A stretch of 64,000 bases of DNA from Podarcis erhardii (GCA_964252035.1 OZ176200.1); one strand, 5' to 3'. Positions 33,305 to 33,749 are shown, counted from the stretch's first letter. A program made the numbers and translations. The notes: generated by a model not told the origin, from the sequence alone.

Positions 33305-33562
33305 GGCGTCGCCGCAAACTTTCCGCCTGGCCGCCGGGAACCACTCGCTGCCGCCGCCGCCGCCGCTAATGCCGCCGCCGCCGCCTCCTCCTCCGGCGCC
33401 GCACTTGCTCCAAGCGCTCTGGCCCCTGCCCGGGTCCGGCTGGAGGCACCAGGCGGCCGAGCCGAGCCCTTTCGGCGACGCGGGGTCCGGGTTGGGCACG
33501 CAACTCCCCGGCTCCAGCCCTGCGGGAGCGGGCAAAAGCGACAGCGCAAGGTTGGTCTCCAG
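33305..33562 (-). CDS. WT1: Putative CUG-initiated 86-aa N-terminal extension of WT1
   Basis: In frame with the ATG, no stop until 33769-33767, no upstream ATG; CTG at 33562-33560 has A at -3 and G at +4; peptide motifs CVPNP, CLQP and SAWSK resemble the mammalian extension (recalled, not aligned). Confidence 0.55.
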
Positions 33563-33749
33563 GGTCGCCTGCGGGTCCGGCGGACAGCGAAGTTGAGGGG
33601 AGAGAGAGAGAGAGCGGGTGTGAGGGAATAGAAAGGCGAGCGCGGCAAAAAAAAGGCGAGTGAGGGACTGGCTGGAAGCGGCTGAGGGGAAGACCTGGCC
33701 TGCTGAACTGGCTGCGCGGGAGGAGGGAGGCGCGAACTGACTGACTGAG

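Follow-up and report, generated by a model that had tools for sequence, protein, structure and literature searches.

As a central regulator, WT1 governs the development of kidney, gonad and mesothelium, and it acts both as a tumour suppressor and as an oncogene. In human and mouse, translation of WT1 can be initiated at a CUG codon, as described by Bruening and Pelletier (1996) and Miles et al. (2003), both cited in PMC4474557 and PMC12045569, giving a longer protein that is designated here cugWT1. Judging by the title that PMC4474557 gives for Miles et al. (2003), the N-terminal extension is mammal-specific and mice lacking it are normal, and the CUG-initiated protein has recently been proposed as the oncogenic form of WT1 (PMC12045569). 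A review published in 2022 credits non-mammalian vertebrates with the +/-KTS isoforms of WT1 only (PMC8965737). In their survey of non-AUG initiation, Ivanov et al. (2011) placed WT1 among the cases already known, drawing on evidence from human and mouse, and no statement on WT1 outside mammals was found in that paper (PMC3105428). Regarding birds and reptiles, a full-text literature search found no report of a WT1 extension, and Wt1 isoforms are known to matter in reptiles with temperature-dependent sex determination (PMC12617523).

The locus considered here belongs to a stretch of 64,000 nucleotides from the lizard Podarcis erhardii (GCA_964252035.1 OZ176200.1), referred to as the window, which includes the first exon of WT1 and its leader (Table 1). 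As compared with the standard AUG-initiated protein, the canonical part of this exon is ordinary WT1, with 97.8% identity to Podarcis WT1 and 91% to Varanus, and it is matched by the Pfam WT1 family PF02165 (E=1.9e-55) with profile position 1 on the canonical Met, that is residue 89 of the translated stretch. As the profile starts at this Met, the residues encoded further upstream lie outside the curated WT1 domain, the rest of the exon being a full member, and a Pfam search with the extension alone matched no family. Upstream of the ATG, the WT1 frame contains 154 open codons before a TAA is reached, and no ATG in any frame occurs from 33800 to 33305; given this TAA, there is no upstream AUG in the same exon that could feed the extension, which spans 258 bases and 86 residues when counted from the CTG at 33562 to the ATG at 33304. 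The poly-Gly tract inside it (period 3, 19 copies, a run of about 20 residues) is lineage-specific: Varanus and the other squamates have a shorter version, birds have none, and its length always changes by whole codons. A sequence-only reading of the window had described an AUG-free leader open to that stop, in-frame CTGs at 33562, 33544 and 33517 adding 86, 80 or 71 codons, and the extension peptide itself: translation and a scan for ATG agree with the first of these, the positions and counts of the CTGs hold, and the same peptide is obtained upon translation. The main ATG, which that reading had placed near 33305, is present but occupies 33304-33302, 33305 being the base before it.

Table 1. 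Features of WT1 exon 1 and its leader in the Podarcis erhardii window (positions counted from the first nucleotide of the window; a slash marks a splice junction).
Feature	Position	Strand	Remark
WT1 exon 1, canonical coding part	32893..33304	-	ends at donor AAG/GTAAGG
Canonical WT1 start ATG, context GACGCC-ATG-G	33302..33304	-	translation and start of Pfam profile
N-terminal extension ORF, 86 codons, from CTG to the codon preceding ATG	33305..33562	-	
Proposed non-AUG start CTG, G at +4	33560..33562	-	homologous to mammalian WT1 CUG start
Kozak context GCGACC, A at -3, abutting the CTG	33563..33568	-	
Second conserved in-frame CTG, context GCAGGG-CTG-G	33515..33517	-	candidate extra start
Acceptor-like CAG/G, just 5' of CTG 33517	AG at 33521-33520	-	
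(GGC)n tract encoding poly-Gly inside the extension	33346..33402	-	Tandem Repeats Finder
TAA stop closing the WT1 frame upstream	33767..33769	-	frame translation
Conserved promoter / transcript-start-proximal block	33749..33817	-	nucleotide alignment

The comparison covered four squamates, namely the window, Varanus komodoensis (L004), a divergent species (L001) and one closest to snake (L002), together with two birds at the DNA level, a neognath (L003) and a kiwi (L007 and L008). Further DNA came from a non-human eutherian (L005) and from a frog-like WT1 mRNA (L006, Logan SRR5149436), and marsupials were included at the protein level only (Monodelphis P0121 and Antechinus P0184); turtles, crocodilians, tuatara, geckos and marsupial DNA were outside the sample. 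A protein search with the extension joined to exon 1 gave full-query alignments to ORFs or gene models of squamates, many birds and mammals, and its matches included no curated sauropsid entry that starts at a non-AUG codon. The search with the extension alone returned a single squamate ORF, but few candidates shared words of five residues with the query, so that this result does not inform on breadth.

While an open frame of this length may look like a sign of coding, it was dropped as evidence. GC makes up 75% of the lizard leader stretch, where the two remaining sense frames hold only 0 and 1 stops; at 69-81% GC, the sense frames other than that of WT1 likewise contain only 0-1 stops. The openness of the frame is therefore no more than chance would give, and the case rests on the comparison between species, where the pattern of conservation, unlike the open frame, exceeds chance. 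From the CTG at 33562 to the ATG, the frame is intact in the three other squamates and in both birds, without a single frameshift or stop across the interval. Further upstream of the CTG, in-frame stops are found in all these squamates and birds, with no ATG in between.

At the codon level, maximum likelihood gave an omega of 0.11 for the extension in the WT1 frame (GY+F3X4, 71 gap-free codons), the lowest of the six frames, the other five ranging from 0.22 to 5.9 under the same model; the hypothesis of omega=1 is rejected in the WT1 frame (2dlnL=120.8, p=4e-28), and while a protein-guided codon alignment tilts slightly towards low dN, a codon-blind nucleotide alignment shows the same picture. 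Pairwise NG86 estimates of dN/dS among squamates and birds range from 0.18 to 0.41, close to those of the canonical part of exon 1 (0.10-0.27), and fall to 0.03 between neognath and kiwi (9 synonymous and 1 non-synonymous change); the WT1 frame has the lowest NG86 value of the six in 15 of the 15 pairs. The minimum numbers of changes at the first, second and third codon positions are 31/23/63 (p=1e-5), and 20 of the 56 variable codon columns keep their amino acid. Insertions and deletions follow the same rule, as every one of the 51 pairwise gap runs within the extension is divisible by three in a codon-blind MAFFT nucleotide alignment, compared with 18/82 in the 150 nt upstream. Nucleotide identity is 72-85% in the extension vs. 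35-66% in these 150 nt, and the in-frame peptides upstream of the CTG are unrelated between species, becoming alignable from two codons before it, where the aligned sauropsid start reads A[TI]-L-E-x-N-L-[AS]-L-S-L-L-P-A. In birds, only 11 variants of the 76-residue peptide are found among 55 distinct ORFs or models, including those of turkey, parrot and kiwi. The amino acids of the extension are under strong purifying selection across squamates and birds.

This peptide is also homologous to the mammalian extension. In BLASTP comparisons, the lizard peptide matches the opossum (Monodelphis) extension with E=5e-7 and 39% identity over 62 residues, the eutherian extension with E=0.002 and that of the kiwi with E=4e-20, and a comparison of the sauropsid profile with the mammalian one by hhalign gives E=5.5e-6 and a probability of 86%; the similarity to mammals is thus above chance, even if identity reaches only 33-39% and dS is saturated. 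Shared motifs occur in the same order, namely a Leu-rich N-terminus, [ST]C[VLA]P, PAS, CLQ and W.K.G, and the marsupials bridge sauropsids and mammals with ATL, WCLQQ and TWSK. When the profile of the extension was run against 1.84 billion representative proteins, it retrieved amniote WT1 and three weak matches, two being proteins matched in 20 and 9 stretches, which suggests repeats, and the third an unrelated repeat ORF. The sequence-only reading had quoted both the motif order of the mammalian peptides and the context of the mammalian CUG: TCVPEP, GCLQQ and IWAK are indeed found in that order in non-human mammalian sequences, and the non-human eutherian contig reads CGCGATC-CTG-GAC. Its central proposal, a lizard leader encoding a homologue of the mammalian CUG extension that would be ancestral to amniotes, is supported by omega, by the indels, by the alignment column of the CTG and by the homology of the peptides.

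Conservation begins abruptly at the Kozak context of the CTG at 33562, the sequence located 5' of this context aligning poorly. This CTG is the first in-frame near-cognate codon past the TAA and its context is optimal (A at -3, G at +4). When the nucleotides are simply aligned, GCGA[CT]C-CTG-GA is identical and falls in one column in the four squamates, the two birds and the eutherian, so that codon and context share the same position in every amniote DNA sequence, and the codon is CTG in 8 of 8 DNA sequences. By comparison, the nine codons that follow include four Leu codons which differ synonymously between species, reading CTT, CTC, CTG or TTG. The CTG at 33544 belongs to these variable Leu codons, reading CTC or CTT in other squamates, and is therefore not a conserved start. 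The CTG at 33517, on the other hand, is invariant with its flanks in all six sauropsids, in a segment absent from mammals; its context is good (G at -3, G at +4), and it may serve as a second start giving 71 extra residues. Over the 15 codons between the CTG at 33562 and the acceptor-like site, changes by codon position amount to 5/1/9 and those in Leu codons are synonymous only; as the two conserved CTGs already enclose sequence with the coding pattern, the coding region begins at 33562. Among the mammalian proteins, a partial WT1-like protein of the European mink Mustela lutreola (P0105) reads AIPDF, with Pro at the position of the CUG-encoded Leu, where every other amniote sequence has AILDF or ATLE; either the CUG start was lost in this species or the sequence contains an error.

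Regarding the transcript, the sole alignable sequence located 5' of the CTG in squamates, bird and eutherian is a block 190-250 nt upstream of it (CTCAATTAGC ... GGGCAAAGCC ... GTAAGAAGTTCAAGGCGGCTCC), which is preceded by a (TCC)9 run at 33877-33851 and contains the in-frame TAA; between this block and the CTG, the alignment is poor. The frog WT1 mRNA contig aligns to the block with its 5' end, including an exact 10-mer (AGGCGGCTCC), and in mammals, too, the WT1 mRNA starts within the matching sequence. The block probably corresponds to the core promoter of WT1 and the region where its transcripts start, and the alignment of the frog mRNA end suggests that the lizard transcript starts about 200 nt upstream of the CTG. 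Gnomon models of birds include the extension region; among the Logan contigs that carry the extension, none is a spliced transcript.

Several other explanations of these data have to be weighed. The interval could be coding and yet be reached from an upstream AUG, either through a first exon spliced at 33521-33520 or through a longer transcript with an in-frame ATG. Three independent gene models, of Hirundo (P0016), Limosa (P0033) and Lonchura (P0211), do join a short ATG-bearing upstream exon in frame at CAG/GGCTGGA, this exon lying about 1 kb upstream of the CTG in the neognath contig with the donor CAG/GTGAAT, and CCGCAGGGCTGGA is invariant in all six sauropsids; in addition, the Gnomon models X5-X7 of Pezoporus occidentalis (P0015, P0194 and P0195) place the start at an in-frame ATG that lies some 123 codons 5' of the conserved CTG, with the consequence that the extension is annotated there as ordinary AUG-initiated coding sequence. 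However, the kiwi copy of the upstream exon, likewise about 1 kb upstream, is followed by CAG/GAGGAT, which is not a GT donor; in the neognath contig, the ATG and the end of the exon are in different frames, and no match to the exon was found within 30 kb upstream in the lizard window. Nor can this route explain the constraint on the 15 codons located 5' of the acceptor, and the ATG-free succession of in-frame stops upstream of the CTG in squamates, kiwi and neognath extends to the stretch equivalent to that of Pezoporus. Entry from an upstream AUG is on balance improbable, and the upstream exon of birds, seen at L003:50-122 and L007:1224-1301 with the consensus M.[AS]E..LSR[KR]L..KE..FPGAV, may represent an alternative first exon specific to neognaths, or else a gene-prediction artefact. 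The invariance and good context of the CTG at 33517 also allow a reading where the extension is real but its main sauropsid start is this codon, with 71 extra residues, the CTG at 33562 being conserved for some other reason. Yet a scanning ribosome would meet 33562 first, in a context at least as good, the stretch between the two codons already varies synonymously under amino-acid constraint, and the CTG shared with mammals is 33562 and not 33517. A main start at 33517 thus appears unlikely, and since both codons could be used, it would refine the preferred assignment to 33562 rather than contradict it.

Two further possibilities dispense with the WT1 frame altogether. The interval lies within a CpG island (GC 0.69-0.76) and all three sense frames are nearly stop-free, as would suit conserved non-coding DNA or RNA, such as promoter sequence, 5'UTR elements or an RNA structure, in which an open frame follows from a GC content of 75%; three-base periodicity, an omega of 0.11 and indels that are all divisible by three speak against it and make it very unlikely. 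A conserved RNA structure downstream of the CUG was considered in its own right and is supported neither by covariation nor by folding: the covariation term of RNAalifold is unfavourable (+2.44), compensatory changes affect no more than 2 of 29 pairs, and shuffled sequence folds at least as well as the lizard leader (z=+1.78). As for an ORF on the plus strand, for instance one encoding a protein of a WT1-antisense transcript, plus-strand ORFs of 162 and 245 codons do overlap the interval, and the antisense frame that shares its wobble positions with the WT1 frame has an omega of 0.22. This low value is the expected echo of shared third positions; besides, dN/dS in that frame exceeds that of the WT1 frame in 15/15 pairs, a stop interrupts it in the snake-like squamate and it fits less well (lnL -774.9 vs. 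-766.3), which leaves an antisense origin of the constraint hardly credible.

We consider it likely, and hold with good confidence, that the 258 bases before the ATG are protein-coding and that the 86-residue extension is the lizard orthologue of the CUG-initiated cugWT1. The intact frame, the AUG-free leader, the conserved CTG with its context, purifying selection and homology to the mammalian peptide are direct observations. We infer in addition that the CTG is part of the lizard transcript, that it is used and that the extension is translated. The WT1 mRNA would start near the conserved block, at about 33800-33750, and a 43S complex scanning the leader would find no AUG, the CUG at 33562 being the first in-frame near-cognate codon to be reached and lying in an optimal context. 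A fraction of the ribosomes would initiate there with Met-tRNAi, and the others would pass on by leaky scanning to the strong AUG. By this combination of CUG initiation and leaky scanning, it is proposed that one mRNA yields both the long and the standard WT1 proteins.

If the extension of lizards and birds is orthologous to that of mammals, it arose before the split of mammals and sauropsids, and the longer WT1 very probably dates to the ancestor that mammals, reptiles and birds share. Looking further back, the leader of the frog-like mRNA (L006:1-195) is 195 nt long and AT-richer, contains three in-frame stops, of which the one closest to the ATG lies 16 codons before it, and shows no similarity to the extension. 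Likewise, a few fish and coelacanth proteins with in-frame residues upstream of the Met contain nothing similar, and the profile search of 1.84 billion representative proteins gave no amphibian or fish match. This suggests, within a limited sampling that includes one frog mRNA, an origin after the amphibian-amniote split. That the extension is an amniote-wide and strongly constrained CUG module of post-amphibian origin, of which sauropsids may make two forms, from 33562 and from 33517, is judged reasonably likely, considering an omega of about 0.1 in sauropsids and a peptide almost invariant from kiwi to songbirds.

With an amniote ancestor in place of a mammalian one at the origin of the extension, its function is probably general and not tied to mammalian traits, and non-mammalian systems, such as the embryo of the chicken and those reptiles in which temperature determines sex, become available for finding it. 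An amniote-wide module, if true, would overturn both the label of mammal-specific and the statement that non-mammals have +/-KTS isoforms only, and would imply a function hidden by the normal phenotype of the mouse knock-out. As sauropsid gene annotation starts WT1 at the AUG, a systematic gap is also flagged.

Within the C-terminal third of the extension, the window (33305-33345) was set beside the mammalian proteins P0119 and P0121: sauropsids keep [ED]W[FL]P..R[RQ]KVC and have no counterpart of RRSRGAS. In human cugWT1, the AKT site S62 lies within RRSRGAS (PMC12045569). The AKT site not being conserved in sauropsids, any function shared with mammals would reside in the N-terminal two-thirds, and control of the long isoform by AKT would then have been added in mammals.

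Compared with cugWT1 of mammals, the lizard extension belongs to the same gene and exon, lies in frame directly upstream of the same ATG, follows an AUG-free leader and begins at a CTG of the same alignment column, in the same GCGA[CT]C-CTG-GA context, with a homologous peptide behind it. The differences concern length (the lizard having 86 residues, birds 74 and the eutherian contig 73), a segment added in sauropsids and not in mammals, NL.LSLLPA.AGL, which contains the second conserved CTG, the poly-Gly expansion of the lizard, unlike cugWT1, and the C-terminal third, which is unrelated in detail (mammalian RRSRGAS vs. sauropsid R[RQ]KVC). Translation of the extension has been demonstrated in mammals only, the sauropsid form being known from sequence. 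With respect to the +/-KTS pair taken as standard for non-mammalian WT1, a conserved coding leader implies at least two more sauropsid isoforms. Beyond WT1 itself, the features on which Ivanov et al. (2011) relied are all found at this locus, namely upstream in-frame stops, a low Ka/Ks and a conserved near-cognate codon in good context (PMC3105428), and sauropsid WT1 matches their class of extensions whose conservation reaches past mammals and which start at a non-AUG codon in all species.
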